The position numbers were made by a program, and so were the translations under genes. The notes under the pieces were generated by a model that worked only from the letters and a program-made list of their open reading frames with translations, made no database searches and was not told the origin of the DNA. Below are positions 12,477 through 60,335 of a stretch of DNA of 64,000 nucleotides, piece by piece; position 1 is the first letter of the stretch; every line of letters starts with the position of its first letter. This DNA is from Blepharisma stoltei ATCC 30299 (taxonomy: Eukaryota > Protista > Ciliophora). The DNA is taken from positions 372,001 through 436,000 of the forward strand of contig CBFDEM010000046.1 in NCBI GenBank assembly GCA_965603825.1, in the 5' to 3' direction.

Positions 12477-15400
12477 ATGAATAAGGTTAAGAAGAATTTA
12501 GAAGATGGCCATCATCTTTTCTTAGGTAAAAGTGCATCACAAAAAATAGAGAAAGCCTGGAAGCACATTTGTTCATGCTTGTTAGAAATTTATGAGCCTC
12601 GATATGATAGAAAAGTACCAATGCGAACCCAATTGCTCATGGAAATTTTATTGAATTCTATAATGACTATACAATCGGTTTCTATGTTTTGATATCCTGA
12701 AATACCCCTTCGCAATTGAGAATCATACTCAACATTTTGAGAGTATCTTTCTTTTTTTAATTACGATAGCTTATGTGAGAAATTTGGAATATTTAATTAC
12801 TGCTTCCTCAGCCATGTTTTGGTTATTTCGTATTCATTTTTGATTGTGGTGACATATATTATCTTAAAATACCTTAGTATTAGCATACCAAAATTTTTTA
12901 TTTTTTCTTGTAGAAAAGTAATATCAATTTTATCATCTTTTGCGATGATTCCAACAGCTATAATATTTCTTGTAGTTTTCAAATATTCAACCTTTAGAAA
13001 TTATCATAAAGCGCAGGAATATTACGAAAACATCATCAGCGATTTTGATTATGGTATTCCAGGAACGATTTTTAGCTCGATCTGCTTTTGCATTTTAATT
13101 CTCCTTATCTTTGCAAATGAATTGTTTACAGCTGATCTTAAACACTATCGCTCTAAAAGAAATATAAAAGCAAGGTCAAATTCTTTATGGGATTTATATT
13201 GACTTATGTTTTGCATTATTCAATGAATAATGTTCGTTTTCACCGATAAAGCTTGAATCGTTTATTATTGAGTAGTCTTACTTTTAATTTCTTTATACTT
13301 ATCAAGCAGAATGTTTAGATATTTACATTACTATAATCCTATAGAAAATTCAATTCAAGCTTGCAAAATAAGCCAAATTTGCTGTTGCTTGGTTATATTT
13401 ATAATTGGCTATGCGAAAGATGATATAATGACGATTACATTATTATGCATTTTTTTACCACCACTAGTCAGTGTGTTTATAGCAGTCAGAATTCATAAAA
13501 AATATGCTAATCTTAAGGAGCAAAAGTATACATATAATCGATATAATTTTGAAAAGTCCATTAGACATTTATTAGTTGAAAAAAATCCTGCAAATCAAGG
13601 GCGAGTTCTTCAATTATTTTCCCAATGTGCCAATCAGAGAAACATGCTATCAAGTGGAATTTTAATCGTGTGAGAAGCGAATTTCTGCATTTGTGTAGCT
13701 AAAGATAGCAGACTTGGGAGAGTTAAATTGACCAAGTTATCCTTATCGAAATCAAGTATTGAGACGACCATACAAAAAAGCCGTATTTTAAAGAAATTAG
13801 AGAGGAAAAATGTGAGGGTTTTATCAGAAATAGAATATTTGGATTATTTGACAAAAATTACAAAAGTAAAAAGATATGACGAGGATATTTGCTATACGTT
13901 GCTAGATTTATGGAGCGAAATAGGCAGAAATAACCCAGGAATAATGAAGCTTCGGTATTTCACTGAAGAGGTTTTTTACCTTTGTTCAAAACTAAGGAAG
14001 CTATACAGCTCTCTTGCAGAGAAAAACAAATATCCTGAAGTCAACGAGCTCTATGGAATGTTTCTCATGAACATCCTTGGAGAATATGAAGAAGGAAATC
14101 TGATTCTCAAAAGAAAAAACCATATAAAGGAGTTTAATTCACTAGTGGAAAGCCATTCAAAACTCACAGATTATGGAGAAAATGTTGGTGCTGTGTTGAT
14201 ATCTTTGCATCCAGATTCTTTTGGAAAGATTTCTTATATTAATGAAAAAGCAGCAGTTTTATTAAAAGTTTCTTCAACTGACATAATTGGAGCTGATTTT
14301 AGTATTTTCATTCCGAAGCCTTTTTCATTCTCCCACAATGAAAAAATGAAGAATTGTTATAAATTCTGCATCAGTACAGTACTAGAAAAGCCGCACTCAT
14401 TGGTCTTGGCTGACCATAAGGGGTACTTATTTAAGTGTGAAATTCTAATTAAGCTTACTGCGTTTAAAGACAAGTCTTACTTTATGGTTTCTTTCATTCA
14501 AAAATTTACAAAGCGGCAAGCTATTCTGATATCAGAAGAAGGAGAAGTATATGGCCATACAATGCATTTGTTGCCTTTATTAGGGCTAGGCCAAGGAATT
14601 CTTTCAGGCTCTCATATTTCTTCTTTATTCCGCCGAATTGATTTGAAGTCTATGTTTTTATTTGAGCCTTATATAATTGAAGAAAATAATACAGAATTTG
14701 CTTTAGTCCATACCACTAAACTCATAAAGCAAACTGCTGTCCATCTAATTCTTGTAATTTATGATAAAAATGAAATTGAAATATGAAAAAGCAAGCAAGC
14801 AGATGAACAACTTGACCACTACAATGAAGCCTCCCCAATTCTGAGCACAACGGTAACCAGATCCTACGAAAGATTCAGCATAAACTTCACAAATCATACG
14901 AACAGCCAGACAACTTATCCTGATAGAGCCCTAACTACGAATTACCATGAAAAAACCTTTGACACAACTGACGACGCAAAATCTACCACTCAGGCTCTCT
15001 CTTATTCACAATCATTTTTATCCCGTATTTTTTATATAGAAGCAACTTTTCGGTTCAATAAAAGAACCCATGCATCAATAATAAGGTTTCAATGGATCTT
15101 GCTCTTTGCTATTGTTTCTATGATTGGCACTAATTCTGGGATTTTAGTATATATCATTGCAGAGGTAACACATACCAATTCATTGAATATATTTAATCAC
15201 ATTGGACAGATCATGTTTCATGTTGGAAGTGCAGCTGATGTGGTGAGATCAATTGATTTGGAAATTAGCGAAGGCAAGTATAATCTGACAAGGGATTTAG
15301 GACTATTAAACCAATCAGCTAACGGTCTATTGAGTTTACAAATTGAGGTACTTAACGATACTGAAAAATGAAGCAGCTGCTCAAATACAGAGATGTTTAA

Positions 15401-16697
15401 AGAAAGTGTGATCCCAATATGAAGTTTTGATAATGTCCAGCCTGAATTGCAGTACTATAATTTATATGATATGATCACCATTTTTGTAAAATATGTACTT
15501 TCTATTTAGATGCAACATTTGTATAAAAATGCCTATACAAAAGAAGGATATAAAGAAGATATAAAATGGCTGATCATTAATAGCCTAACTTTTCCATATG
15601 GTTATATAAATTTGCTCTTGTCTAGCATTGTAGACTGCGAAAAAGGTAGAGTTAACGACACGAGTACAACAATTAATATCTTACTGTTTATGGGAATGCT
15701 TATTCTTGGAGTCTGTTTAACAGCTCTTATATATTTTACAGTATGTTTAAAAATTGTATATGAAAAATTTTGGGATTCTCTGAAGAAATCGGTTATTTCT
15801 GCTTATATTGCTCTAAAGCAAACAGCAATGGATAGATTGTCATCAGTTCATGGAATTGAGCTGAGCCAAGATGACAGTATGACATTAAAAAATATCAATT
15901 CAACGACCTTTCACATCCAGACTACACTTACCTGGAAATTCAGTTGAAGATTAAGCTTTTTCGGCGCAATTTCCTTATCTTTTTATCTCTTAATAATGCT
16001 TTACTTCTACAAAACCTGCCAAACCTATATGATCAACCGTCCAAAGCTGTTGCAAAATTTTAATACAAGACGTTCCTTATTATCCAGAATCGGCTTGTAT
16101 GCGAGAGATATTAATAATCCTGTAAACAAAGAAATTTACCCAGATTCCTATAGTTTTTCGAACTCATCAATTGAACTTCAAGATTTAATATCCCAATATG
16201 ACACTGAGTACAAACAAATGCGATCCAATAATTTATTAGACTTGTATTCAGATGATCTAAAAGCCCGGCTGTTTGAAGATCTCGACACATCAGCCGACAT
16301 TATGAAATACGGAACTGCTGCAGCTGCAAGCGCAGTCATTTTTGACGCTTATTATATCGGTGGGACTGGTGGAATCAAGACTGAAAAAGAAATTTCTGAT
16401 TTCATTTCGAATTTTACTGCTCTTCAAGAGGCGATGGCTCTGAGTTTTACAAAGGTCGATCAATGCTCTAAAGATGTGATTTCAGCACAGCTAGATTTAA
16501 TTATTGATATTACTGTAGCCTTTTCAGTTGGGCTGCTTTTGCTTTATTTTTGTTATTATTTGCCATTTTTGAAGAAACAAATTAATTTCTTAACGAAAAC
16601 AAAAATTCTGCCGAAAATGATACCGATTTTGATTACTGAAAAAAGATTTGAGGATTTTCCTAAGAAAAGCAACCTTAGTAAGCCTGGATTATATTAA
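12477..16697 (+). CDS. P1: multi-pass membrane PAS-domain protein (TmcB/TmcC-like), ~1396 aa; introns 15025..15039 and 15495..15509
   Basis: All ORF pieces share one frame with TGA=Trp. N-terminal TM bundle, helical region, PAS (YINEKAA.LLKV...IIG.DF..FIPKPFSFSHN), second PAS-like repeat, 4 C-terminal TMs, ends YYLPF...ILPKMIP. Confidence 0.88.
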
Positions 16698-16719
16698 TAG
16701 ATTTAAATAATTCTTTTTA

Positions 16720-19700
16720 TTATTTTATAGTTGTTATTTGAAAGCTTGCCTCTTGGTAATGCTTTGGTGATTTTTCTGATTTTATACTAGGTGGTATGAT
16801 TGAAATTATCACCTGAAGTTTTGATAGCCTTTCCATTTCATATTCGATATATGGAAGATAATATAAAAAATACAAGATAATTATCGTGAGAACATAAGCA
16901 ACAGCAGCATATAGGATAAAATTTGATTTTTCTAAAATCATATTTTGTGAGGTTTGATCAATAACTTCATAAATCTTAGTCATTAATTGCTGTAATTGGG
17001 TCAGGCTGTTGGTTAAATTTTGAGATGCTTCAAAAAAGTTCTCTTTATCATATTGGAGATCCCAAGCGTCATAAAAAAGTAAATTCGTATATCAAAATGT
17101 GCCATATTTGAATCCTGGAGTCGATGTGTTTTTATATTCAAATAGATTTGACTTGACAATCGAAGACATATATTGCATCCTTTGGAGCAATTGTTTATTT
17201 AAATAATAGAAAGAGCTCAGAGTTTTATCAAGTTCTTCTTCTGGATTTGAGAAAAAATAAGGGTTAAGAGTCCAAAACTCTTTACCAAACCTTTGAAGGC
17301 CTGCCTCTCTTGCCCAAAACCCAATAGCAGGAGTAAGAGCTCTTCTGGATATGTAGGTTGCTAGGAGCTCAGGCCGTTCAATTAGGTATTTTTCACATGT
17401 TGGGTATATATATACATGCACACATACATAATAAACAATAGTAATCGAAAAAAGAATCAAGAGACGCAGGATATACCTCGAAGAAACCGTAAAGTTGACT
17501 TTTTTACCCTTGCTAATATTTTTTTGCACTGCATCCTGGTATTCTTGATTGAAATTGACACCGTGAACTGATGATAGCCTGTCAATACACAAAGCAACTA
17601 AATCAAAATACGTTACAGTTGCTGCTTGAATGATAAAATTTCACAATAAATTATATCTTTTGCTTATTAAATATACTATCATAATAAGCACAATGATGCA
17701 GGTTCCTGCAAGAGCCGACTCAATGATTACAAGAAGCTTGACAGTAAAATTTAATTTGTAAATTTGATTTTTTTCACAATCAATTAGCCCATAAAGAGAT
17801 GAATTTACCTGCTTAAAAGTCTCGCCAAAACCATTTGAGATCAAGAACTGCAAGCTATCCACGTAATCCTCAGGACGATTTAAATTATAAATTAAATTTT
17901 CAGACTAAATATTGATTACATTTTCAACAAATAGATCAATTTCATCATGCAAATTCTTATAAAACACTTTTGGAGTATTCAAAAAATCCCAGGTCGATAG
18001 GAAGCTAGTTTTAACGATTTTTGAGCTGTCGCAGTAGCTTCATGAGTAATAGTTGTTCAATAAATTATTTTGATGTGTAAGAAAATTTGATTTTGAGGCT
18101 TGTAATAATTCAATATAAGTATTGATTTCAGCTTTATCATATTTTGCACAGAAATCAATAGTCCTGGCATACTGTGCAGATGCTATCATATTATACATAA
18201 TAACTCCTAGATCATTGATGGTTTCAGCAGTTTTTGTGTGATTTACAGATTTTGAAATATATATTGATATAGCTATGTTAGAAGCTGAAATTGATAAAAT
18301 CTATATAAAGTATACTGATAAAAATAATACCAATTTGAATAATTTTAAAGATTTTTGGCAATTTAATATAATGCGTGCTCCCTTATCTAAATAGTGATTA
18401 CGATTATTATCACGAGAGGAAACACTATAAGTAGCTGAGCTTAGAGTTTTTTCAAGAAAATTTGAGTTAATTTCATTACTTTTTATTATGTCAATAATTG
18501 TACTATCAGCTTCTGATGCATTTTCATCAAGAGTTGATAAATTCCGATTCGTCTGTCTCAGTAACTCATGTTTATCTGATTCTATAGATAAAAATTTAGA
18601 ATATCTTTTTATATCAAAATTATTTTCACTAGTAGTTAATATTGGCGGTTGCTCAGTATATTTTATTTGTTCATAAGCTTCCCCTTTAGTCCATGCATTT
18701 ATTTCATAAAAATCTTGCACCAGAAGAATATATGGTATTTCTGTTGACTTAAAGTCTTTTTTGCAATAAATAACTGCAATTACTTTTTCTTTCCGTTGAA
18801 TTAGTTTTGGCTTAAACAAGACCATTTTCGAAAAAACAATTTCAGGGATTACATTGTCTATATATTTATATATAAGGCATGAGCTTTCTATATTCAAAAG
18901 GCGATGAAAATCTTGTGAATGATTATATATCATTCCTTCCTTTGAAATTAAAGCAGCTTCTCTATTTTTGGTGCATGCCATCATAGAGACCATATAGTAT
19001 AGACTCTCATCAAGGGCTGTTAATCTGATTAAAAATTTGACTTCACTTAAATATCCATTATGGTCTCTAATAAATAGTGTATCTCTTTTGCCTAGTTGTG
19101 GCTCTGTACATGTATCTACAAATCTTTTCATAGTTTCTGCATGAAATTCATTATATGGTTCTGGTATATACTGGTCTATTTTATTTCCTACCATATTATC
19201 AACAGTATCTTTCAGAAGTTGAGCTGCAATCTCATTAGCATATATAATTATCCCAAAATTCCGTTTTTGAGCAGAAATCACCATATTCCCAGAATATTCC
19301 TCGAATTTTGTAATAACATTTTCATGCATCATTATTTCTTCTTCGCTTTTTAATTGGTAAACCTTATGCAACAAATTTGCTCCTTCATTGAATTCCTGGA
19401 AAATATTTTGTAGAAGGCCTCCATATAGCTCATAAACATGTGCATGATTTGTATGAAGCATTTTCTTATATCGATCTTCAACTTTTCTAATTTCGCAATA
19501 GACTTCATTTGATAAATTTTCTAGTTTATTTAGGCTTGATCTCTTTGAGGAAATTTCATATCAAAACTCTAGTAAATATCTGCATAAAAACTCATCTTCG
19601 CTCTTTGCCACTTCTAAATCAATTAAATAGACTAAAAAATTATTTGCTATTTGATCTGTTCCTGGATGCTTTTTCATCCATTCTTGGATCCTTAAAGCTT

Positions 19701-21000
19701 GTATTTCTCCCTCAATGCTTGGTAATACACTTCCCATTCGGGCATACTTTATTTTTGCAAGTCTGATATCATTCAATGTATGTAAAAAATAATATACTTC
19801 TCATGCCACCAATAATTTGTCGCGTCTGAACATGGGAGTATTATAGATTTCTGCGAATTTGTTTATGATATTACCACTGTGAGTAGTTGAAGGATCCATT
19901 AGAAACTTACGAATTTGGAGCTCAAAGGCATGTTGATCCAAGGAAACTTGGCTTTCCTTTGAATTTTCAACTAAAATTAAAATTTTACGGAAAATAAGTA
20001 TCCCAGCTGCAGGTATTATACAAATACTAAAAATAAAAGTTATTCCAGCATTATCCATTGCGATCCCAATAAGAAAGCTGAAGGAAAATCCAGATAAAAT
20101 CAAGAGCTGAGTGATTCTTATAGCGTTAAGTATCGGATTGAAATATGAGTTGAATTTAAAGGTGAGATAAGAAAACATAAGAGATAGCACGAAAACGAAC
20201 CAAATATGCCATATAAAATGATCATACCCATAAAAGACATATATAAATACTACTATAAATTTGCTGAATAATTGGGCTATGTCTAAATTTGAGTCTGACC
20301 TTGCTTTTATATTAAAATTTGAAAAAGAGTGCCGAACATCTGCAGTGAATAATTCGTAAATAACAGTTAGTAAAAAAAGTAATATTGCTGAAGAAATGCC
20401 TAAAATCGATCCAAATGCTCCTAATGGAAAATTGTTCTTTGACAGTGATGAATATAGTGTACCATCAGGATCAACTAAATATGAGTACTTGGCAGTTACC
20501 AATAAAATCATAAGAGAAGGAATATAGCCAACAGAAAATAAAAATCCAAAAAGAAAACTTGGAAGCTTTATAAAAGCTTTCGGTATTTTTCATGACCGAA
20601 ATATAAGGGTACTGATTATACTAATGTAAATTAAACTAGTTCACAGAAATGTAACTATAACCAAAAAAGCTGGAAAATAGAGGCGAGAATCAGAAATTCA
20701 TGAATCAAAGCTGAAATATCCAAAAAGCTGTCAGTAAATGCCAAATTTTTTTCAAAGTCTGATGTTCATCGTAGGATACCAAAGTAGTGTGACAATTTGT
20801 ATAACATTTAGTGAATTTATGATCACTTCCATCGCAATTTGGGTGGCTTTTTTGGTTTTTATGTTATACTTTGATTTGAAAAAAATCTGCAGAGATTGAA
20901 TCATGTAATTTTTTGCTTGTTTTAGTCAATCTTCCTTTCTTGAATCAAGGTATTTTAAGGAAAAAGAGTCCTTATCAAATTTTTCACTGTTTAAAACCAT
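16720..21000 (-). CDS. P2: divergent, inverted member of the PAS membrane family, ~1411 aa; introns 18387..18401, 18301..18315, 17905..17919
   Basis: ATG at 21000 (MVLNSEKF...LLWYP); all minus-strand ORF pieces are in one frame. Same motifs as P1 (ELFTADVRHS..NIKARS, YIPEPYNEFH, DRLSSVHG, YYLPY). Confidence 0.88.
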
Positions 21001-21789
21001 TTATCACTTAATTTTTATTTTTGACTATAGAAAGAGATTATGACAACAATATTCTTTTCCATAGATTTTTAAAGGATTTTTTTTTTATCATTTAAACCCA
21101 CGCTCCATTCTAGTATTATATAAATATTTAATTATTCTTTTGGGCACAATAAGCATCAACTTTTTTCTGTTATTATACTTTTTTAAAGTATATTATATGG
21201 CTTTTATAATAAAATCTGCTATTACAGAAGCTTTTTAATAATTTACGAAAGTTTCAAACAAACAAGAAAACAATTCCTTTAAATTAGAAAATTATTAAGC
21301 AGTTGCGAATTTTATCTTAATTATTAAAATCTAGAGGAATTGCCTTATTACACTTAGTCAATTCTTCAAGTTAATTTATTTTTTATTTATGAAGATTATT
21401 TTATAAGCTATTCTGTAAGGATAATGCATCCAGAGAAGTTGTATATTGAATTATAAAAATCCTTTTCAGCAATATTAATACTTAAAAAGCCAAATTCTAT
21501 AATCGTCCATAAACTGTGTCTAGAATTATTCTTAAAATTAAATCATTTCATTTACAATAGGGAATACTTTTTTCAATATGATTTTAAGGCCTTATTAAGT
21601 GTTAATGCATATTGCAAATCATATATAGCTTAGGGTCTGATTTTGATCTTCCAGGCTTAACTATCAGTTTTTGCTTAGTATTAAAGTTTTATCAATAAAA
21701 ACAATATAAAAAATTTTCAATTCAAATTCTTTAATGGCAAATCTATATAATTTCTTATTCACACTAAAATAAAAATATTCCTAGCTTTT

Positions 21790-21905
21790 ATTATAGAACT
21801 TATGAATTCTGATCTCAGACACTCAGCAGGTCATAAAAATTTTAAAAGCAAGGTCTAATTCATTGTGAGATTTGCTCTGCATATTATTTTTTATTGTTCA
21901 GTGCT
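21790..21905 (+). pseudogene. Short remnant of a PAS-family gene
   Basis: Reads IIELMNSDLRHSAGHKN / KARSNSLWDLLCILFFIVQC with a frameshift, matching P4 ~26870-26980. Confidence 0.75.
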
Positions 21906-22903
21906 TAGCAGCTAGACTAATAGCGAGCATCCAATAGCAATAAACGAAGGTGTTTTTGGCAAAAGATTGCACATCAAAATTTTAGTGTGTAATTTAAGTA
22001 TAAAGCATGTACTAGTAAATTATATTTCATATTAAAATAAGCAAATTTTAATGAAAACACAAAACCATTAAAAAATGTGGCGCCACAAAATAAATTCTGT
22101 TAAGAATTGCAGTTATTTTTCCCTATAAAAATTGAAATTTACTTGCCAGCTATTTTCAACTATTAAGCTTAGTTTTAGCGAACCAACATATTTGGCATCC
22201 AAAAAAAATATATTATCAAAAATAATTTAACTTTTACAAGAAAAAAATATTCTTAACAAGCATTCAATATACAAAAATCGCAGAATTCTAGAGCACCGAT
22301 GGATTTATATCATAATTAAGTATCATAATCCCGCTCTGCAAATATGTGCAACAGTTGAACATTAGTCTATTAGATAATGTATAAACGAAAATATCCCTCT
22401 CTGTAGAATTAGTTTATTAATCTTTGCATCACTTTTTCAAGTATTTTCTTATGCTTCTGATTCATTCACCAGCTAAGCCAAATTAAAGTGCTACGATTTA
22501 TCATTTACTTCAAAATAGCAAACCATAGCTTAGGAAATATGCTCTGGGAAAAAATATAAACCGCATGTGCTATTCAGCATCATAGATTATAAACTTGTTC
22601 TATTAGCTATGTGATTGCGCAATTCTAGTTAATCTCCTATCAATTTTTCATTAGCAGGGGACCTGGCATGGTGAATTAAGTATAGAGTTCACAAAAAATC
22701 TAGGGATAAAACAAAAAGCTTAACAGCTAAATTTCTAAAACTTAATATAAATACAAAAATTTTGCCTTTAAAAAAAAGCTAAAAAATAGATAAAATTTTG
22801 AGACTTTAAACATAAAAACTTGTTTATTACTGGAAACATATGTTTTATTTTTTATTCTAATTTTCTGGTAGACTTAGACATAATACTCTATATAAAAATC
22901 TTA

Positions 22904-25600
22904 ATGATAGCAGGAACTGAAAACTTTGATATCGATGACTATCAATCACTCGTGCACAAAGAACAGTCTGGCATATTTAAAAGGTTACAGAAGTTTTTAT
23001 TAGTTCATTTTATTGAAATCTTTGAGCCTGAGCTCAATGCTCAAATCTCTTATAGGAAGCAAATAACTCTCGAGATGATTTCAACAATAATTATTACCAT
23101 TCAGGTAATATCGCTTTTTTGGTATCCTGGCATGCCACTCCGTCATTGGAGCTCATATTCAATGTTTTGAGATTTTCTCAGTTATTTTTCTATTTGCATA
23201 GACTTACAAAGTATGGCTTTCTTAAAGAAAACTTTGAAGCGTATATACAAAGGTTAAGAATTTTAAAGAAATTTGAAGAAAGCACATGTGAATTGCCAGA
23301 AATTAAATATTTACACAACTTGCTAGATTTAGATGAGGCTAAAAAATCTGATGCAGAATTTTGTTTGCTTTTATTAGATTTCTGGGCTGAAATTGCGAGA
23401 AAAGATCCAAGAATAAGCAAACTAAAACATTTTGATAAAAGAATTTATGATCTTACTAATAAAACCAAGACGCTATATTACTCACTTTCACTTTCACAAG
23501 AAACTAGGAATTATGAGGTTTTTGACTTATATGGATTATTTTTGATTAATATTCTTGGAGAAGTCGAAGAAGGAAATATTATGCTTGGAAAGAAACTAAA
23601 CATAAAGAACTATGAGTCTTCAATAGAACTTCAAAATTTTAAAAATTATGATGAAAAATATGGAACTATCTTAATATCAACAGAGATCGGCGCATTAGGG
23701 ACTATTGCATATATGAATGAAAGAGCTGCAATAATGCTCAAAGTATCTTCTGCTGAAATGATTAGGCGAGATTTTAACCAGTTTATACCCAAACCGTTTT
23801 CTTTAAATCACAATCACTAAAGGCTCAATTATTATAAATCATGCACAAGCACGGAGCTAGAAAATTTTCATGCATCCTTTCTTCAGAACCGAAATGAGCA
23901 TATCTTTGAATGCAACGCTCTAATTAAGCTTACAACATTTAAAATAAAGCCTACTTCATGGTTACTTTTACCCAAAAAAAAACAGCAAGACAAATAATTT
24001 CCATATCAGATGAAGGACAAATCAGCAGCCACTCTTCACAATTAGCAGCCACAATAGGTTTAGAAAGAAAGAATTGCACAGGCATGAATATATCTGATAT
24101 AATTAGCTATGATTGGGACTAATATCGGAGTAATAGTTTATGTTATAGAAGAGGTAACACATACAAACTCTTTGAATGTTTTTAGCCATCTTGGTCAAAT
24201 TATGTTTTATATTGGGTCAACAGCAAATATAGTGAGATCGATTAATATAGAAATTGAGCAAGAGATATATAACCTTACAAGAGATTCTGGCTACTACAGC
24301 CAAAATATCGATGACCTTTCGGTTTTACAGCAAACTCTATTGAGTGGCAAATCGCAGTGAAATCATTGTCCAAGCTCTGCAATTGTAACAGAAAATATCA
24401 TTCCTCTATGGGAGTTTGACATGGGAAAGCCATATTTGAAAAAGTATAATCTTTATGATACAATTACAAATTTTATTATACATGTAAAAAATATTTAGGG
24501 TCAATCTTTATTGAAATATGCTAAACAAAAGAAATCGGATATATATATGAATCGAAATGGCTTATGATAAACAGTGTAGGATATTAATAAGCCAATCATT
24601 ATCTGACTTAGTTGAGTGTGAAATAGACAGAGTATATGATTCAAGCTTAATCATTACTTTTTTGATGTGGACTGGGGTGATTATCCTTGGTCTCTGCTTA
24701 GCGATACTTATATACTTCATAACTAAATTGAAAGATGCATATGAAAACTTTTGAAAATTCATCAAAAAATCTGTCATTTCAAGCTATACTCTTCTTAGCC
24801 AAGCTGCTTATGATAGGCTTAGATGAACCCACGGAATTAAGATAAGCAAGAAAAGATATTCCAACCACCAGAAACACAAAGCTATTATATAAAAACAAAC
24901 ATTACTTGAAAATTCAGTTGGAGATTGGCATTTTTTCTAATTATTTCAATAGCTTTTTATTTTTTGATGATCTTTTATCTCTATGGAGCATGTGAAATAC
25001 ATATGATAAATCGACCTAAATTATTACAAAACTTTAATATAAGGAGAACTTTACTTGCAAGAATTGGATAGGCCAGCAAATAAAGCATTTTATCCAGAAT
25101 CTTGTAGTCTTCCTGATCCATATATTGAGCTTCAAAAATCAGTTTTTTGATACTGGGATGAGTTCAGAAGTTTACACTCAAAAAGCCTTCACGATTTATT
25201 GTCTACCTCAATAAATAAGCGAATTTTTGAAGAAACTGATTCACCATATAACCTTATGAAATTCGGGACTGCTGCTGCGGCAAATTCAGTTATTTTCGAT
25301 GCATTTTATATGGGAGTGCACGAGTTTCGTTCACTAACAGAAAAAGATAATTTCATAACAAATTTTACAGTTCTGCAAGAAGCTATGCATAAGAGCTTCG
25401 ATATGACAGATTCAAGTTCAAAAGAAATCATTTTTTCACAATTAAATACAATTATTGATATCACTCTCGCATTCTCAATTGGGCTTGCCTTACTTTATTT
25501 CCTTTACTATTTGCCTTTTATGAAAGCTCAGTTGAGGTATTTAGAAAAAGCAAGTATTTTACCGAAGATGATTCCTGAAAATAGAAATCAAAATTTCTAG
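22904..25600 (+). pseudogene. P3: internally deleted, frameshifted paralogue closest to P4; retains intron 24484..24498
   Basis: Jumps from the N-terminal WYP..WSSYS segment to the post-TM region at ~23190 (~1 kb missing versus P4). In-frame TAA at 23818-23820. A second jump at ~24103 (~0.5 kb missing) and further frameshifts. Confidence 0.88.
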
Positions 25601-26229
25601 AAGCTATTTTTGTGGAGTCCAATTAATATGAAGAAATATAGGATAAGTTTTCATAATAACTTGATAATAAGTTTTTCATCGCTAATAAAAGAACTTAAAT
25701 CACATTATTTATTGAAATAAGTAATTTATAAGCACGGAAACAAATTTTCTTAAAATTTACAGTGACTTTTATATTTTATAAAAAATTTTAAAAAATTGCT
25801 ATCTCTTATCAAGATGACAGTAGATATTTTAATAGCAGAATAAGGTATTAAAAAAATTCTTTCTATTTTCGAAATAGCATGTACTTACAATTAATCCTTT
25901 CTTATATGTTGCATATTCTGAGCTAAAAATAAAAACATGATATACTAGAAAAAATCGATGAAGAAAAAAAAATAATTTTCTCACAATTTTGTTTCAGTAA
26001 GTTCTTCAAAAAAAGCAATCATAGAGGCAATTGAAAAAAATATATAATCCAGCAGCCGTTCTCAAGGATTCCTCTATTTTAAATAAAATTTAGAAGAAAT
26101 TGTCATTTCAATATATTTTAACGTCTTACTGATAAAGTTAAGATGATTTTATGTATTTATTATCTCTTTTATTATGTCAGTTTATTTACTAGCCTTAGTT
26201 AAAAATAATTAAATATAAAAATAACTTAA

Positions 26230-30480: not shown

Positions 30481-30927
30481 TCATCTTTTAATAAATATTT
30501 TTGATCAGTTTGATGAATTTGTTGTGAGCCAAGCATTTAATAAGCATTTTATATATTTAATTATTAAGTTTAAATTAATTTTTGTTTACTAAAATCTTTG
30601 AATATAAATTTTATTAAGAGTAAAGCCATCAGAAATGCCTATCCTGGAGATTTAACCTTTTGCTATGAGTAAAATTAATTTTCAGTATAAATTTTCTGGT
30701 AAAAATAATTTGCCAGATTTATAATTTGAAACATATACAAATTCATACAATATTTTTCAAGAAGCCACATTATATTAACATCTTCAAAGCATTGAATGGT
30801 GATTAAACAACAGGAATATCATTTAAAGATTAAAGTATGGAGCGAGATAAGTTTAATTGGAAAGCTAATAATATTTTAGAACCTAAGAATAGGTATATTA
30901 TAATTACTTTATTTTTACAAAAGAAGA

Positions 30928-30983
30928 TATAGAAATTGCCCGAGGATGGCGCTATTTTGCGGCATCCTCGGGCAATTTCTATA
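30928..30983. repeat. 56-bp palindrome (25-bp arms, 1 mismatch, 6-nt loop) bounded by TATA
   Basis: TATAGAAATTGCCCGAGGATGGCGC-TATTTT-GCGGCATCCTCGGGCAATTTCTATA. Confidence 0.95.
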
Positions 30984-31381: not shown

Positions 31382-34300
31382 ATGAATATCAATGATGACC
31401 CAAATTCTCACCATCTAATTTCTAGCAAAGAATCATCCAGCAACTTTAAAAATCTATTGAAATTTATATTAGAGTGCCTTTTAGAGCTCTTTGAGCCTGA
31501 ATTTTCAACTAAATCTCAAACTAAGTGCCAGATAATAATTGAAGTTATTACAAACTTAATATCAATGATTCAATTAGTATCAATTTGTTGATATCCTGAT
31601 ATGCCAATCAGCGAATGAAATTCATATTCATGGCTTTGGAATTCCTTATGAATTTTTAATTATGACAATTTATGTGAAGGATTTAGCATATTTATTTACT
31701 GTTATATCATTGAATTTTCCTTAGTTATTTATGCTTTTTTTACTGTGATTTTATGCATTTTTCTTAAATATTTTGGCTATAAACTGCCATTAATTTTTAT
31801 TCATACTGTCAAACAACTATTATTTTATTTTACATCATTGCTATTTATTCCATTTTTGATTATTTTACTTCTAGTTTTCAAATATTCAGCCTTTAAAAAT
31901 ACACAAGTACAGGAGTATTATGATAATGATTTGTCTAAATTTGATTATGGAATTTTTGGGTCAGTCTTAAGCCCATTCATTTTTTCCGTTTTTATTGCAA
32001 TGGTCTTTACCAATGAACTCCTAACTGCGGATCTAAGACATTCAATCTCGGATAAAAATATAAGAGCAAGATCTAACTCTTTATGAGACTTAATATGAAT
32101 ATCATTTTGTATCGTGCAAAGCCTTCTGTATGTTTTTATGGATCAAAGCTATTTAATTTATTATTTAATTATACTCTCAGTTATGGGCTTATATTTATTT
32201 TGATGTGGAATAAGATTTCTGCATTATTATAACTCAATAGAAATGTCTATTAAAATGTGTAAAGTTGGTTCAGTTTGCATAATCCAATTATTTTTTATAC
32301 TTGGCTATGCAATTGATGATGCTGAAACTCTTACAATCCTTAGTATTTTTGTAACACCTTGATTTTCTGCATATATCATTTATTTTATTCACAAAAAGAA
32401 TTCAGGCCTCAAAAATAGAGCATGCAATAAATTAAATCAATTTACACTCGAGCATACATTAAGACATTTTTTAATCAACAAGAGCTATGACAATAAAGAG
32501 GAAATAGTTAGAATATTTTGCAAATATTCTAATAAGAAATGCTTTATTAGTGATTATCTTTTAGTAATATGAGAAGTTAACTTCATCAGTTATACAATCA
32601 AAGATGAAAGATTAGCAAGAGTAAAATTAGCCAAAATCACAAGTTTCCCATCTAGCTTTGAAGGAATCATCCAGAAGCAAAGAGTTCTTAAAAATTTTCA
32701 AGACAAAAAATCTCAACAATTACCAGAAATTGACTATTTAGAATATTTAACTGGACTTGACAAAGCAAAAAGACTTGATGAGGAATTATGCATTATTTTG
32801 ATGGATTTATGAGCTGAAATTGCTGGGAAAAATTCAAAAATTATAAAGATACGTAATTTTTCTGATAGAGTTGCTGATCTCTCTGATAAATTAAAATCAC
32901 TATATAGTAGTCTTGCAAATAAGAACAAATATCCTGAAGTATTTGATTTATACGGGATGCTTTTAATAAATATTCTTGGGGAACCTTATGAAGGAAATAT
33001 CATGATTCAAAGGAAATATGGCATTAAAAAAATTAGATCGATTTTAAGGGATCATAGCAAGTCGGTGGATTATGGTGAAAATGTTGGTTTTATATTGATA
33101 TCAACCCATGCTGACTCTTTTGGAGCTGTTGCTTATATGAATGAAAAAGCTGCAGCGATATTGAAAGTTTCATCTGTTGAGATAATAGATCAGACTTTAA
33201 TGTTTTTGTCCCAAAACCCTTTTCATTAACTCATAATGACAGAATGAGAGAATATTATTATAATTGTGACAAAGCTATAATTGATAAGTCTCGATTTTTG
33301 CCACTTCTAGATCATAATGGATTTATAATTGAATGCAATCTTTCAATTAAACTTACAGCTTTTAGCAATGAGGCTTATTATATGGTATCTTTCTCTAAGC
33401 ATAAAACCTCCCGGCAATTAATCCTTTTATCAGAGGATGGGTTTGTTTATAGCCACACTTCACAACTATCAACCTTAATTGAATCTGAAAATGCATGCTT
33501 GCATAATATGATGATATCTGAATTATTCTTAGGAATTGATTTTAATAATTTTCGGCTATTTGAGCCAGTTATAATTCAGCTTAAAAATAAAAAGCTCGCT
33601 TTAGTTCGCATTGTAAAAGCACTAAAGGCAACCAAAATCCATACAATTTTAGTAATAAGTGATCGTAATGAGATAGAAAAGTGGTTAAAAAAAGAATCCG
33701 AAGAGCAAATTGAATATTTCAACGCGGTTAAGCTAGCAACTGATATGATTTTAGATTGCGAAAGAGACGATAATGAGATTATATAAGTGGCCAAATAAAC
33801 TCCATGTTACATTCTGTAGAGGACGCTGCTATGATTAACGCTAACAATGAAAAAAGCAATGATGAAAATCCTATTTCTCAAACCCCCGCAAGCAGTGTTT
33901 CTCAAAGTTCTACCTTTGATCGTAAATTTTAAATAGAAATAGCACTTAGATTCATAAATAGCACTAATGCTGCTATAGTCAAATTCAAATGAGTTTTGCT
34001 AATTGCTGTAATTTTAATATAGGTCATTGCTATGATAGGAGCAAATATAGGAATTTTGATATATATTGTTGATGATGTTACTCACACAGACTCTTTAGAA
34101 ACATTTAACCACCTTGGACAAATCATGTTTTATATTGGCTCGGTTGCAGATCTTTCTAGATCAATTGACATAGAACTATCTAGCGGAAAGTATAACCTAA
34201 CAAGAGATTTAGAGTATCTAGAAAATGATATAAAAGCTCTTAATGCTTTGCAAAACACTATATTAGATGACAAGTCAATGTGGAACTATTGCCCGAGCTC

Positions 34301-45122: not shown

Positions 45123-48100
45123 ATGAATAGAAACGTCAAAGAGAGTGATCTAAACTCCCATCATCTGATTTCAAGCAAAACCAACTCTAGTAGTCTCAAA
45201 ATTTCATGGCAATTCTTCTTGAACTGTATGATAGAAATATTTGAGACTCAATACAGCACAAGAGCTCCTTACAGAAATCAATTATTTATTGAAGTTGCTA
45301 AAAACATGATAATGCTTATTCAAATCCTATCATTATTTTGGTACCCAAGTATATCTGTCAGTAACTGAAGCTCCTATTCGACATTTTGGAATTTTTTGTG
45401 GTACTTTAATTATGACAGTTTATGTATGGAATTAAACATTTTCTCTTATTGCTGTATAAGTGAAGCGTTTGCGCTTTGCTATTCAATTTTTATGATAGTA
45501 TTATATTGCATACTGAAGCTCTCTAGGCATAATTTACCCAAAATATTTCTTTTCTTAGCTAAAGAATTGATATCATTTTTATCCTCAATATCCTTTATTC
45601 CTATTTTAACTACTCTACTAGTGATTTTTAAATACTCGGCATTTGAATACACAGAAGTTCAAGAATATTATGAACATGATGTAAATAAATTGAATTATGG
45701 CTTATTCGGATCAATTTTTTGCCCTATCCTTATTGGTTTCCTTTTTATGTCGGCGTTTATAAATGAGCTTGTTCGAGCAGATATAAAGCATTCCTCATTT
45801 GGGAAAAACTTAATAGCAAGGTCTGATTCAACATGGGATTTGCTATGAATAACTTTTTGTGCTGTTCAATGCTTTTTATTTGTGTTTATGGATAAATCTG
45901 CAGTGCTATTTTATTTAACAGTACTGCTAATACTAGGGTTATATATATTATGTTGCGGTTTTCGCTATTTACATTATTACAGTCCTGTGGAAAGTTCCAT
46001 ACAGAACAGCAAGATAGGCTCAATCTGTACAGTTCTTATAATTTTTATACTTGGATATACAATCGATAATGCTGCTACAATGACATTATTAAGCATCTTT
46101 CTAATGCCCTTGGTAACAGTTTTTATCACATATTGGACCCATAAGAAAAACTTAAAACTTCAAAACTATAAAAAGAACTCGTTAAATCAATTTTCCTTTG
46201 AGCATTCTATGAGACATTTTCTAATAAATAAAAGCTGCCAAAACATTGAGGGAATTATTCGACTATTTTCAAACTGTTTTCATCATGATAAATTTAAAAA
46301 TACCTCTCTCTTTGTCATATGAGAGGTAAATTTTATTCAATATATTGCTAAAGACGAAAGGCTAGCTAGAGTAAGGCTTGTCAAAATTAATAGAGCAGAA
46401 TTTAGCATTGAAGGGACCCTTCAAAAGTATAGAATTTTAAAGAAATTAAATAGCATAAAATCAAAAAAACTGGCAGAAGTTGATTATTTGGAGTATTTAA
46501 CTGGGATTGATGAAGCGAAAAGATGTGACGAAGAAATTTGTCAAACTCTATTGGATTTATGAACTGAAATCGTATGTAAAGCCCCAGAAATAATAAAGCT
46601 CAGAAATCTGACTGAAAGAGTTGCTGATCTTTCTAGTAAAGTCAAAGAACTATACAGCAGTCTTGCAGATAAAAACAAATTTTCAGAAGTTTTTGAATTA
46701 TATGGCTTTTTCTTAATAAATATTCTTGGGGAATCTCAAGAAGGAAATTTAATACTAAAAAGGAAGCATAGCTTTAAAGAATTTAGCTCAGCAACAGGAA
46801 GCCATAAAACGCTTGGAACTTATAGTGAAACTCAAGGCGTTATGCTAATCTCTACAGCTTCCGACTCATTTGGAGCTATTTCATATATTAATGAAAAGGC
46901 TGCAATGATTTTGAAAGTTTCTCAACTCGAAGTGGCAGGTGCTGATTTCAATATGTTTGTTCCTAGACCTTTTAATATTAACCATAACCAAAAACTGAAG
47001 CGATTTTACGAGAACTGCACGGAAACTGTGGTAAATAAGCTGTCTTCATTATATTTATTAGACCATGAAGGATTTATTATAGAGAGCTACATACTAGTAA
47101 GACTCACAGCATTTAATAACAAAGCTTATTTTATGGTCTCTTTTTCTCCTGTTAGCACCTCGAGGCAAGCCATTCTTATATCACAAGATGGACTGATTTA
47201 TGCTCACTCTATGCAATTGCCATCTTTACTGGGAATGGACAAACTGGATTTGTCAGATATGTATATTTCAGAGCTGCCAATGGGAGTTTTTATGCAGAAT
47301 TTAATTCCTTTTGAGCCATATGTCGTCAAATTATATCGTAAAGAAGTTATAGTCGTTTATATCACCAAAAATCAGAGGGGGGTAATAATTCATATAATTT
47401 TAGTGATAATTGATCAATATGAAAAGGAAAAATGAAAAAATAGACAATCAGATGAGCAAATTGAGTATTACACAAAGGTTTCACCAATACTTGAAGTTGC
47501 TAGTGGTGTTTATGAAAGAGAAAGCTTTGAAAATGATAAAAATATGAACATTGACTCTCTAATGCCTTCAATCGCTGAAAAAACAGTCTTAATAAATACT
47601 ACTCATGGTGCAACCAGCGAAAATCGTGAAGATGATGACATTGAAAGAACGCCAATTCTCGATAATAGTACTTCACAAGCCTCCTCAATAGACAGTAAGT
47701 GTTATATAGAAATTGCATTTAAGTATGTAGGAGAGACTAGCGTTGCTATTGTCAAATTTCAATGGGTTCTGCTCTTAGCTGTATTTTTTATGCAGATTAT
47801 TTCAATGATTGGGACAAATATGGGGATTTTAATATACATCATAGATAATGTCACTCACACAAACTCTTTGGAAACCTTTAACCATCTAGGCCAAATAATG
47901 TTCCAAATTGGGTCAGTCGCTGACCTTGTGAGGTCAATTGATCTTGAGCTCACTGAAGGTAAATACAACCTCACTAGAGACTTAGGGTATTTAAGCCAAG
48001 GAATTGACACTTTAATTAGTTTGCAAGGCACTATTCTAAATGATAAATCAACGTGAAGCTATTGCAAAAGCTCAGAAATTGTGACTGAAAAAATGATCCC

Positions 48101-49388
48101 TTTGTGGGAAATTAATGATTGAGATGTTAAGCTAGAAAAATATAACCTTTATGATACTGTTACACTTTTTATTCAACGGGTATTCTTTACATAGGAGCAA
48201 GATTTATTAAAAGATGCTACAAAGAAAAATAATTTGTATGAAGACAATATAAAATGACTTATGATTAATAGTCTGAGTTTTGCGTTTTCCTCTATAGAAG
48301 ACGCTTTGTCAGATTTGGTCCTCTGTGAGCATAATAGAATTTCAGATACTGGAAGTATTATAAATGGTCTTTTGATGCTTGGGGTGATAATTTTAGCTAT
48401 TTGTTTAGGAGTGCTTGTATATTTTATAGTTTCGCTTAGAGTTGTGTATGAAAAATTCTGGAGCTTTATTAAGAAATCAGTAGCGATTAATTATGTATAT
48501 CTTAAACAAGCTGCCTGGGATAGACTGATATCAATTCACGGCATCGAATTGAATCAAGATAACAATGGCTTACAAAAACCTGTTGATCTGCACAATTTTC
48601 ATATAAAAACTACATTAACGTGGAAATTCAGTGCAAGATTAATATTTTTTGGCGCAATCTCCTTAACTTTTTATTTTTTGGTTATGTTTTACTTATATAA
48701 AAATTGTGAAGATTATATGAAAAGCCGTCCTAAGCTATTAGAAACTATCAATCTGCAAAGATCTTTGCTTTCAAGAATAGGTTTATATGCAAGAGATATC
48801 AATAATGAACTTAATAAAAAATATTATCCGAAGTCCTATAGTTTTGCAAACTCAACAAGAGAGTTTAGTTATTTGGTTTCTCTTTATGATACTCAATGTG
48901 AATTAATGCGCTCAAGTGATATCACAAACCTACTTTCTAATGAACTTAAAGCTGCTCTTTATGAGTCATTTATTTCTTCATATGATCTTCTGAAGCATGG
49001 GGCATTTGCTGCTGCCAATTCCATTATTTTTGATGCTTACAATATAGGAGGTCCTGGAGGGATCCGGTCAGATAAAGAAATTTCTGATTTTGTATCAAAT
49101 TTTACGATTTTTCAAGATGCTATAGCTGAAATATTTGATATGGCTGATGCAAGCTCCAAAGATGTAATTTCTTTACAGCTGACTTTAATTACCTACACTA
49201 CTGTTCTTTTTTCAGTTGGTCTAACCTTGCTATATTTATTTTATTATTTGCCATTTATAAAGACACAAACGAATTTTTTAAGAAAAACAAAAATTTTACC
49301 AAAAATGATTCCAGTTTCAGCTGCTGAGAAAAAAAGAGAATCATTTTCTTCTCAAACAAATGCGTTTAGTGTTGGTGATATAAAATAA
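45123..49388 (+). CDS. P8: PAS membrane family protein, closest to P7, ~1406 aa; introns 47695..47709, 47781..47795, 48180..48194
   Basis: All ORF pieces are in one frame with TGA=Trp; near-identical blocks with P7 (CTETVVNKLSSLYLLDH, EVASGVYERESF). Confidence 0.88.
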
Positions 49389-49569
49389 AGCCATAATAAT
49401 TTGTTTTGAAATGCTTTTTGAAAGAGGAAAAGTAACTAATTTCATTAAAATTAAGATCGATCATGTTTAATTTTTGAGAGCTAATAAAAATTGCTGTTAG
49501 CATAAGTGCTGCAAATATAGAAATTGCATTTAAATTGATTCAATTATCAGAAATACCAATAAAACGGTT

Positions 49570-49900
49570 TTATTAATACTAATTTTTGCTGTATTTTTTA
49601 TATAGATTTTAGCAATAGTTGGGACAAATATTGGGATTTTAGTTTATATTGTGAGAGATGCTTACTTATAAAAATTCATTAGACACTTTTAATCATTTAG
49701 GATAAATAATGCATATGCAGCAGATTTAGTAAGATCTACAAATTCATTAGACACTTTTAATCATTAGGATAAATGCTTTCAATTGGATATGCAGCAGATT
49801 TAGTAAGATCTATTGATGTGAAAATAGAGAAACGGTTAGATTTCCTTTCAAGAGACTTGAATTACTTGAATGACTCGATATATCGTATAATTGAATTTCG
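49570..49900 (+). pseudogene. PAS-family remnant with retained intron (49591..49605) and an internal ~70-bp tandem duplication
   Basis: LIFA|ILAIVGTNIGILVYIV. The block aaattcattagacacttttaatcatt...atatgcagcagatttagtaagatcta occurs at ~49672-49738 and ~49740-49812. Confidence 0.85.
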
Positions 49901-50812
49901 GACAAGTTGCTAGGATAGTAAAATGCAGAGCTAACAGTTGAATTATTTTGCATGGCCACAGAGATCTTTCAAATAATTCGTTCATTGCTTTCTATATCAG
50001 TAAATAGCAAGTACAATTGATGAGTTAGTTTGGCAATTTTTACCAAACATATTCTCCAAATTATTAGATTTTGCATGTCGACTATATTAATAGTTTTTAA
50101 TCAGAAATAAATCCTTTATATATAAATGTTGTTAAAAATTTGAAATGGTTGATGAAATAAATTTTTTTAGATCAGAAATTATATCGTTTAATCTTTTGTC
50201 TGAATGATATTAAAAACTTTTAAAAAAGCAAATATTTTTAGATTCAGCATTAAATATTAAATTTCTTTTAATTATATATATACCTCAGTTTTCAACTAAA
50301 TTATAGAGTTAAGATAAGAAATTTATTTCTAAAATTAGAGTAATCATAAAATGGTACCATCTATAATTTCGCTTAATTAACTTCCTCCTTTGGCAGCTTT
50401 TTTAATTATATGGTTTAATTAGTGAACTTCTATTGAAACAACTGGCGGAGATTTCATAATAACTGTGACTAATTTTTGAAATTTAGAAGGCATCCTTAAA
50501 TTCCCACACAAAAATCATTAATTAGAGCACACTTTGTACAACTGATAGGAATCTGATGAAATCTTAGTAGGTAAAATGATTGCAAATTCTTGAATTGGCT
50601 TTTTAGCATATAAAATGGCCTTTTCTTATTTGTTGGAAATTTATATATAATTTAATTATGGTAAATGTTTTAAGGAATTTATTTTTATTCTTATTAATAA
50701 GCAGATATATGGATTGCCTAAATAATTATGTTATAATTTCACATTAGATGAACTCTTAAATATATGTATATATAAAGAAACTCCACCATATATAGGCCCG
50801 TCCTTAGTAAAT

Positions 50813-54994: not shown

Positions 54995-55049
54995 AATATT
55001 AATTTATAGTTTAAGGAAAATTAATAATTAAATAAAGATTAAATTACTA

Positions 55050-55640
55050 AATGAAGCATCATAAAATAGTAAATAAAGCAAATCATAATTGACTGCTTGA
55101 TTCAGATATTTAAGCCTTACTTTACTCATAGAAACAATATCAATATTCAAGTAATTATTGAAATTATTACTAATTTTACAATGTTTCTGCAGGCTGCATC
55201 CAATTTTTAATTATGACTGCATATGTGCAAATTAAAATATATATATATATATATATTTATTGCTTCGCTGGGAAATCTTGGCAGCAGTTGTCAAAATAGA
55301 GAAGAAGTCCTAGCTATAATTTTTTATTACTCATGTAATAAATTTTTCGCAAAGAGTCATCTCTTTATCATATGAGAAGTTAAATTTTTAATGCGCGATG
55401 TTAAAGATGAGAGGGTTGAAAGGGTAAAATTTAAAAAAAATTCCATTTATACAGGCCAAGCTGGAAGGGAATATGCAAAAACGCCGAATTTTGGAGAAAT
55501 TTTATGAAAAAGAGTTTAGAGATTTGAATAAAATAGAATATTTGCACTTCTTAACAGATCTTCGTAAAGCTGAAAAAGAAAAGATAGGAAAATTTGTTAT
55601 GCTATATTAAATCATTGGGCTGAAATAGCGCAAAAAGCCA
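55050..55640 (+). pseudogene. Highly decayed PAS-family remnant containing (AT)10 at 55237..55256
   Basis: Recognisable pieces DCLIQIFKP..QVIIEIITN, FNYD, LFIIWEV..VKDER and IEYL. Confidence 0.7.
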
Positions 55641-56153
55641 ATTTTCAAATATTTAGATTTTTAACAGAATATCTTAAGATTTTTCAATACAAATGAAGCT
55701 ATTTTATGTTATTAAGCTTCTATGATTGCATTATCTATTAACCTTAATAAAAGATCTAATAATGATAACCAAACCTTGTTTTAACTAACTATATTTGAAA
55801 ATTCAATGCCTAGTAAATATAAGACACAAAATTAGCAATTAAAAACTAAACAATCATATGCAATTTGATTTATTAGAATAATTAATTTAATGATCAAAAC
55901 TTAATTTTAGAATTCCGACGAAGCTCTTTTTATAAGATTACCTAAAAAGCGTTTCAGCCAAGATTTTTATAATTATAAATTAATTATTTATATGATAAGC
56001 CATAGCATTTTTATTTTATAATTTATTATTTATGTTTCGGTTCTCATCTTTACCAATTAAAGTTCAATATTTATGAGGTAAATGTCGCTTATTAAGTAAA
56101 ATTTTTGCTATTTATGCAGACATAATAATTCGAATAATTATTAAAATTTAATA

Positions 56154-59100: not shown

Positions 59101-60335
59101 AGTTTGGGCAAGAGCCTAAAATAAAGCACTATAACTTTTACGATTTCGTTTCATTGTTTATTGAATATGTATTTTTTATGTAGATAGGAAAAACAATAGA
59201 AGATTTCTCTACAAAAATCTCATATAAAGATGATATAAAATGGCTAGAAGCAAATTCATTAAGCTATCCTTTCCAGTATTCAAATGCAGCTTTAGAAGAT
59301 CTCGTAGAATGCGAGAAAAATAGAATTTATGATAAAAGTCAAGTCGTTATAATTTTGATAATTGTTGGAACTCTGATTTGTGGTGCATGCTTGGCATTGC
59401 TTATGTATTTCAGTTTTATACTGAAATTTATATATGACAAAGCATGGACATATTTAAGAAAGTCTGCCATTTTTAATCACATTTTGCTTAAACAAGCCTG
59501 CTTGGACAGACTTATATCTGTTCATGGCGTTGAAATGACAAATGAGCACATATTATATGAAATAATCCCAAAAAATATGAATTTTAATATAAAAACAACT
59601 CTCACAAAAAATTTCTTCATAAGACTCTGCATTTTTGTCATAATTTCGCTATGCTTTTATTTATTTACTGTTTTTTATTCTTATGATATCTGCGAAAATT
59701 ACATGATAAATCGGCCAAAATTGCTACAGCTCTTCAATAAGCAAAGAATAGTACTTGGAAAGATTTTGTACTATACTAAAGAAATAAGTGAGTCATGCTT
59801 AGATGATTATCCAAATTCCTGTGCTTTTCAAGATCCAAGAACTGAATTTGATAAATTAATTGAAGAATATCAAAATTTAGACTCTAATAAATTGCTTTCA
59901 AACGGAATGATTGAATTTCAGTCTGATGATATGAAAAGAGACCTTTATGAAAAAACAGATTATTCTGGCGATTATTTGAAGTATGGATTAATCCCTGCAG
60001 CGCATTCTTTAATTTTTGACTCTATTTATATGAGAGGTAGCTATAATGAATCAGAGTTTCTTAACCTCTTTTCAGAGTCCACATTTTTGCAATTAGCCAT
60101 GTCAGAGTTTTTACCATTATCGGAAAAACGAACAAAGCATGCAATATTTTTTCAGCTAAATATAATTGTATATACAACTGTTATTTTTTCAATAGCTTTA
60201 GGAGCTTTGTATCTCTGTTACTACTTGCCTTATTTAAAAAGAGAGATTTCATTTCTCAAAAAGTCAAGAATTTTGCCAAAAATCATTTCAAATTTGACAT
60301 CTCATAAGAGTGAGGTAGAGTATAAGCAAGCTTAA
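56154..60335 (+). CDS. P10: PAS membrane family protein, ~1378 aa; introns 58687..58701, 58773..58787, 59169..59183
   Basis: ATG 56154 (MIDNLVED); one frame. The in-frame TAA/TAG codons I found all lie inside the three 15-nt introns. Confidence 0.87.

Follow-up and report, generated by a model that had tools for sequence, protein, structure and literature searches.

Introduction

Trichomonas vaginalis has about 123 genes for receptor adenylyl cyclases called TMACs, 46% of which are pseudogenes and which are rarely arranged in tandem. The proteins have 1450-1700 amino acids (aa), 6-8 N-terminal transmembrane (TM) helices and a conserved cytosolic domain of ~300 aa, and in their C-terminal half 4-6 TM helices separate two extracellular domains before the cyclase follows (Cui et al. 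2010, PMC2914791). In Dictyostelium, tmcB is described as a regulator of the cAMP pathway during sexual development (PMC12750705, citing Muramoto 2005), and homologues of the tmcB family were missing from the sampled metamonads except Carpediemonas (PMC8516963). In the genome paper of the ciliate Blepharisma stoltei, two clustered orthogroups (OG0000018 and OG0000052) were described with at least 7 N-terminal TM helices, central PAS domains in some members and identity below 40%, and their clusters were characterized by old duplications, pseudogenes undergoing erosion and a low coverage (Singh et al. 2023, PMC9942806 supplement). Here we analysed a stretch of 64,000 nucleotides (nt) from B. 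stoltei ATCC 30299 (the window), which is part of contig C46 in an assembly of 64 contigs totalling 41.46 Mb and carries an array of genes for giant PAS-domain membrane proteins.

Receptor-level chemical and oxygen sensing is poorly understood in ciliates, and TmcB is known from Dictyostelium genetics only. Based on a structure model, we propose with a probability of about 0.6 that each intact gene of the array encodes a 12-TM, two-sided sensor that has no enzyme of its own and would act through a partner protein. The genes are already annotated and the family has been briefly published; the structural reading given here turns this orphan family into a testable one.

Results

Gene models and family membership

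The GC content of the window was 30%, and long frames appeared solely when TGA was read as Trp; the standard code and a code with TAR readthrough were rejected, as they yielded short frames only. A tblastn search with code 4 located 13 loci of one homologous set in the span 12477-60335 (Table 1), at the coordinates given in an earlier note made from the sequence alone. That count stood, and so did the proposal to retranslate with code 4 and splice: removal of three positionally conserved GT-AG introns (15-16 nt) gave seven stop-free models of 1378-1411 aa, three of which (copies H, J and K) were 100% identical to the NCBI proteins listed in Table 1. Splicing of the first intron of copy K is obligatory because an in-frame stop lies inside it. 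In most copies intron 1 was in frame and stop-free, and its retention would add five residues ahead of a TM helix. Intron 2 was precisely gone from copy A (site 15110) and kept in copy E and every other intact copy, which is a clean intron loss in copy A.

The array genes almost certainly belong to the TmcB/TmcC family, as had been supposed. The Pfam domain TPR_TmcB (PF25474) scored above its gathering score of 27 in copies H (43.8 bits, E 3e-11), K (52.2 bits), J (27.5 bits) and A (34.1 bits), and a PAS domain after the TPR passed the cut-off in K (PF00989, 30.2 bits) and J (PF13426, 28.7 bits), with which the PAS folds agreed. Twelve hydrophobic helices were found together with no catalytic domain, and the UniRef name of copy H is "TmcB/TmcC TPR repeats domain-containing protein".

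Domain anatomy of the predicted sensor

Copy H was used as the reference for domain coordinates. Its AlphaFold model (aa 1-1200, 60 sequences; pLDDT 85, pTM 0.71) placed eight TM helices at 50-348, followed by a region of helices and TPR at 356-557, a pair of PAS folds at 570-786 and a disordered linker at 789-851. Beyond the linker, a TM helix led to a loop of four helices that held one hairpin; an unbroken helix (1038-1122) then crossed the membrane, and one more TM helix came after it. The receptor-like order described in the earlier note was thereby supported, and its "helical region" more exactly includes the TPR_TmcB domain.

The two C-terminal TM-loop-TM modules were homologous to each other (hhalign P 90%, E 1.7e-6, 215 columns). 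Judged by this profile comparison they are an internal duplication, which suggests a receptor dimer fused into a single chain. The structural matches of loop 1 included PcaY_PP (Z 12.2, root-mean-square deviation 2.6, 140 aa), Adeh_2942 (Z 12.0) and PilJ (Z 11.5), and with the TM-plus-sensor fragment of NarQ it reached Z 11.3 over 192 aa. Among 81 homologues, 58 had both Cys971 and Cys1053, 23 had neither and none had a single one, a pattern as would be expected for a disulfide in a non-cytosolic loop; it is supportive and not proof, because related sequences are not independent. The two Cys reported earlier were found in 7 of 7 intact copies, but the motifs given for them, WSYCPSS and LVECE, were verbatim in D and K only.

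For PAS1, FixL was the top profile match in PDB (E 5.8e-6), its proximal His falling within the alignment, and fold searches (Foldseek, VIA) matched FixL (Z 11.7) and DosP (Z 10.7). His621 stood at the FixL proximal-His position (helix F, P.P....H) and was present in 67 of the 81 homologues, as well as in each of the seven intact copies. Thus PAS1 is, by profile and model, a FixL-like PAS domain with a proximal His, for which heme binding is predicted only. Cys residues were also seen near the predicted heme pocket, at column 632 in 46 and at column 655 in 61 of the 81 homologues, and these are possible ligand or redox residues.

Several observations weigh against a two-sided sensor. There was no conserved Arg in columns 636-650 of an alignment read by eye, where the distal O2-binding Arg of FixL would be expected. 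De novo designed four-helix bundles matched loop 1 as well as the receptor domains did (Z 13.1 and 12.8), so the likeness of loop 1 to receptors holds at the fold level only, and according to the fold-search tool a Z under about 13 is possibly generic among helical bundles. Loop 2 was all-helical in a model of low confidence (pLDDT 46; single-sequence, last exon of K). Finally, the loops had no sign of accelerated change among the window copies. By sequence, the loop-2 profile had no meaningful match in PDB, no PDB sensor match was obtained for the loops, and the families 4HB_MCP, TarH, PilJ and NIT were absent from the 25 most-matched families listed for the 81 members.

The missing output domain and the receptor cyclases

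That the proteins have no catalytic output domain, as the earlier note had read from the frames, was borne out both by the stops after the tail and by the AlphaFold model, in which beta strands were limited to the PAS domains and one small hairpin and no catalytic alpha/beta domain was seen. In 29 of 29 members checked (the 9 tail-bearing copies of the window plus 20 from other loci), the stop lay 0-29 aa beyond the tail match, and a hidden C-terminal exon was rejected for these members, as no tiny intron lengthened the frame. None of 85 PF00211 hits was at a family locus by eye; about 120 family loci, including long-frame members on contigs C30, C57 and C44, were compared by coordinates only. 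Every full-length database relative inspected ended similarly, without an enzyme. On contig C34, a His-kinase ATPase match came 1.6 kb after the end of a family member, but it was a separate gene and was rejected as an output domain. As for the tail itself, a stop soon after it was found as described earlier, but of the seven intact copies just A, D and H had LPKMIP, and the window copies extended 3-29 aa past the tail match.

These proteins might instead be cyclase-less siblings or descendants of receptor adenylyl cyclases, as the earlier note had suggested, sharing a common ancestor with the TMACs, having lost the C-terminal class III cyclase, keeping the LxxxIP helix that preceded it and regulating cyclases in trans, a reading we hold to be possible and rather unlikely. 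A helix of the form LL..(I)LP..va..L precedes class III cyclase domains, and the tails of slower-evolving members (L.rLIP.d....il) resemble it. When the C-terminal module was placed in the Atlas, the cluster closest to it was mostly Parabasalia (0.98, 227/256 features), a lead flagged as weak by the tool. The part order of the TMACs equals that of the array proteins up to the stop (PMC2914791), and a role of TmcB in cAMP signalling, as described in PMC12750705, would also fit. However, no cyclase-bearing homologue was found among the full-length matches inspected or the named Atlas clusters, the tail profile matched no PDB cyclase at E<=10, and word searches plus one metagenome scan for relatives reached only ciliate-type or other cyclase-less ones. 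Cyclase-less forms were present in Blepharisma, Stentor coeruleus, Fabrea salina and distant eukaryotes from metagenomes. Homologues of the tmcB family are reported to be missing from most sampled metamonads (PMC8516963). Even if the TMACs are homologous, a cyclase could equally have been gained, because cyclase-less forms span distant eukaryotes.

Age of the array and selection on the copies

In a FastTree analysis of 41 proteins, copies A, D, G, H, J and K formed one group (99), and copy B paired with a gene from another contig. The array therefore combines a local expansion with a single unrelated paralogue, copy B. The tandem array of the earlier note holds for the local clade of six copies, but it is not one pure tandem run, because B is encoded on the minus strand and comes from another subfamily. 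Copies A and B stand tail to tail with a gap of 22 nt. The birth-and-death history that had been proposed agrees with this clade and with 6 of 13 loci being broken.

The mean identity of the seven copies was 0.39 overall, 0.41 and 0.38 in the loops, 0.41 in the TPR region, 0.46 in PAS1, 0.38 in PAS2 and 0.19 in the linker. In the closest pair (G and H) the loops were 76% identical, compared with 63-70% in the cytosolic parts. The ratio of nonsynonymous to synonymous divergence (dN/dS) was 0.09 and 0.14 in the G/H loops and about 0.1-0.3 for the copies overall, and these ratios are rough because synonymous divergence (dS) was saturated. In every pair among the window copies dS was above 1, which means that the duplications are old.

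A rapidly diversifying receptor repertoire with positive selection on the external loops, in line with the emphasis of the earlier note on a diversifying repertoire, is improbable on these data. Within the window the loops were as conserved as the cytosolic parts, with dN/dS about 0.1 and dS above 1 throughout, so the claim that the loops diversify was not sustained; for this window, such an outcome had been named in the earlier note itself as one that would refute its reading. A large arrayed family rich in pseudogenes would suit such a repertoire, and in 88-97% of the pairs among the 81 homologues, which are non-independent, the variability of the loops exceeded that of TPR/PAS by 5-8 identity points. 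But PAS2 was about as variable as the loops, and surface loops outvary TPR/PAS cores for structural reasons alone. The history is one of old duplication, purifying selection and gene death, with no demonstrable diversifying selection.

Across the genome, no fewer than 149 loci matched PF25474 and 150 or more matched a loop-2 profile, and bigger arrays of the family lie on contigs C17, C4, C35, C32 and C25. The window itself adds little that is unique, as annotations of its genes were already public, the arrays just named are larger and no recent or adaptive diversification was shown. The best-scoring PF25474 loci included stop-free frames of ~1600 aa (C30:448215, C30:543942, C57:528322 and C44:448686), which probably form a slower-evolving subfamily. 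OG0000018 and OG0000052 are very likely the same family as the array, an assignment made from their description.

The N-terminal 8-TM bundle

It is also conceivable, but very unlikely in our view, that the primary function resides in the 8-TM bundle as a PAS-regulated transporter, channel or scaffold, and that the four-helix loops are structural. The bundle was well modelled (pLDDT about 90) and had conserved polar residues (Q67, D98, K170, E181, H223 and N291), its profile had no meaningful match in PDB, and the fold search barely covered it, all of which would leave room for such a function. Against it, no transporter or channel appeared in the Pfam, Foldseek, VIA and Atlas lists (with the same limited coverage of the bundle in the fold search), homologues P0172 and P0177 were recorded without the first TM helices (possibly gene-calling artefacts), and a layout of PAS plus TM-four-helix-bundle-TM is typical of sensors.

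Broken copies and expression

Besides the seven intact copies, the 13 loci comprised one transcribed copy with two frameshifts (E), two pseudogenes and three remnants. Copy E had been credited with a single frameshift in the earlier note, and its public annotation is a 615-aa fragment. The deletions of copy C spanned about aa 97-416 and 717-879. In tblastn, remnants 49505 and 55277 reached E 6e-11 and 1.7e-6, and the weakest one (21784) had E 0.001 with copy H against the whole window and 2.9e-8 with copy D against a 4.3-kb stretch. The remnants are real, because copy H against 20 shuffled windows gave a best E of only 0.15.

About 0.8 of the words of copy G were present in four runs from one study. 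Contigs of these runs placed on 28721-34700 covered the last exons of D and portions of E, the last exon of D being covered in four runs. In copy E, one RNA contig lacked exactly 15 nt at 34008, and two loose contig ends (AAATAGCACTTA and ACCTTTGATC) matched the exon flanks of intron 33922-33936, so at least runs X2 and X4 are spliced RNA. Copy E was thus transcribed and spliced despite two non-compensating frameshifts. Its second break is not an assembly error, because a contig crosses it gap-free; the first break, which had only about 26 nt on one side, might be one. Expression of the copies, on which the earlier reading depended, is supported by these contigs, which show presence and splicing and carry neither level nor stage. 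In the intergenic region of D and E, a single low-depth contig (run X4) skipped 129 nt at 30893-31023 with TA..TA ends; the skipped piece resembles a TA-bounded excised segment.

A reading of the array as duplicated DNA that is for the most part in decay, or as an artefact of assembly, which 6 broken loci of 13 and the low coverage and eroding pseudogenes reported for such clusters (PMC9942806) might suggest, is hardly credible and for the intact copies already refuted by seven open 1400-aa frames, 39% mean identity, dN/dS indicating purifying selection (about 0.1-0.3), conserved introns and spliced transcripts.

Neighbours of the array

Non-family, unrelated-looking DNA separates the copies, and reverse transcriptase frames of the non-LTR (non-long terminal repeat) type were seen in this somatic DNA at 35999-37792 (-) and 819-2093 (-). 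The former (RVT_1 E 1e-19, TGA=Trp) is a fragment between the broken copies E and F. At 3451-5973 (-), 6.5 kb upstream of copy A, lies a homologue of voltage-sensor/channel-type adenylyl cyclases with a C-terminal TPR. Both of its metal-binding Asp positions were replaced when compared by eye (QIINV, KNIQGS) and it had no PF00211 match, so from its residues it is likely a dead cyclase, with no evidence of a link to the array. The other flanking genes in Table 1 are ordinary.

Table 1 Positions of the array copies, the domains of copy H and the flanking genes in the window (the first intron given for a copy is intron 1)
Feature	Position	Strand	Details
Patatin-like phospholipase	8477-9466	+	E 7e-20
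RS-rich RRM-type splicing-factor-like gene	2245-3414	-	by eye
RING/B-box protein	60617-61717	-	
Copy A, intact, 1396 aa	12477..16697	+	introns 15025-15039, 15495-15509; intron 2 missing; TPR_TmcB E 2.9e-8
Copy B, intact, 1411 aa, divergent subfamily	16720..21000	-	introns 18401-18387, 18315-18301, 17919-17905
Remnant of N-terminal TM bundle	21784..21907	+	tblastn against copy D
Copy C, pseudogene nearest to D	22904..25603	+	two large deletions, several frameshifts, one stop
Copy D, intact, 1401 aa	26230..30480	+	introns 28793, 28879, 29278 (15 nt each)
Copy E, frameshifts near 33188 and at 33730-33795	31382..35549	+	transcribed, spliced; intron 1 at 33922
Copy F, decayed 5' fragment, many stops	38093..38988	+	immediately downstream of non-LTR reverse transcriptase fragment
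Copy G, intact, 1407 aa	40004..44273	+	introns 42585 (15 nt), 42671 (16 nt), 43071 (15 nt)
Copy H, intact, 1406 aa	45123..49388	+	CAG9328656.1; introns 47695, 47781, 48180
H N-terminal bundle, 8 TM helices	45270..46166	+	aa 50-348; model; no family or PDB sequence match
H cytosolic helical region with TPR_TmcB	46188..46793	+	PF25474 at aa 446-552; E 3e-11
H PAS1, FixL/DosP-like	46830..47162	+	His621 at 46983-46985; profile and fold matches
H PAS2, degenerate	47163..47480	+	PAS-like strand pattern; profile, model and fold
H disordered linker	47487..47675	+	AlphaFold, pLDDT < 50
H module 1: TM, four-helix-bundle loop, TM	47763..48437	+	loop aa 896-1064, with Cys971 and Cys1053
H module 2: TM, helical loop, TM	48627..49253	+	loop aa 1178-1338; homologous to module 1
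H tail motif LPKMIP	49296..49313	+	family consensus LxxxIP; then 24 aa and stop
Remnant I of module 1	49505..49928	+	15-nt intron survives at 49591
Copy J, intact, 1378 aa	50813..54994	+	CAG9328658.1; introns 53352, 53438, 53834
Remnant of helical/TPR region	55277..55669	+	tblastn
Copy K, intact, 1378 aa	56154..60335	+	CAG9328660.1; introns 58687, 58773, 59169

Discussion

In the two-sided sensor that we favour, both loops would face the outside or a lumen, and in each single chain they would associate as the two periplasmic halves do in the dimer of a bacterial chemoreceptor or of NarQ. A bound ligand could then shift the long helices that cross the membrane into the cytosol, where the TPR and putative heme-PAS module may supply an internal O2 or redox input. 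The output would be altered binding of a partner, most plausibly in cyclic-nucleotide signalling; this partner pathway is a tentative suggestion, drawn by analogy from Dictyostelium tmcB (PMC12750705) and the Trichomonas TMACs (PMC2914791). In its widest form, which is decidedly speculative and we think unlikely, the TmcB family would be the enzyme-less counterpart of the trichomonad receptor cyclases, made of single-chain, pseudo-dimeric four-helix-bundle receptors that are gated by a heme-PAS domain and control cyclic-nucleotide enzymes in trans, and Blepharisma would have a chemosensory repertoire of ~150 such genes, which would parallel in a eukaryote the chemoreceptor sets of bacteria. 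If the two-sided sensors are true, PAS1 and loops 1 and 2 would be expressible domains for work on heme and ligand binding, and TmcB genetics might be linked to the trichomonad receptor cyclases.

Compared with known systems, PAS1 shares with FixL and DosP a PAS fold with a proximal His, but the array proteins have no conserved distal Arg. Module 1 has the TM-four-helix-bundle-TM fold of bacterial sensors (Tar/Tsr, PcaY, PilJ and NarQ). In contrast to these, two modules stand in one chain, domains of the HAMP, MCP signalling, kinase, GGDEF and EAL types are absent, and the PAS domains lie N-terminal to the modules, behind an 8-TM bundle and TPR. The likeness to the TMACs, which is one of topology only, lies in 8 + 4 TM helices and two ~165-aa loops arranged in the same order up to the stop; the C-terminus of TMACs carries an active class III cyclase, whereas the proteins described here have their stop ahead of such a domain and are encoded in arrays. 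The paper that described OG0000018 and OG0000052 did not assign them to TmcB and named neither a heme-PAS domain nor C-terminal sensor modules nor a function. With the TmcB/TmcC family, named after the Dictyostelium tiny macrocysts proteins B and C, the array proteins share by Pfam profile and layout a PF25474 domain followed by PAS in a polytopic protein of about 1400-1750 aa that has no enzyme. The difference is in copy number, as B. stoltei has at least 149 loci, many of them arrayed.

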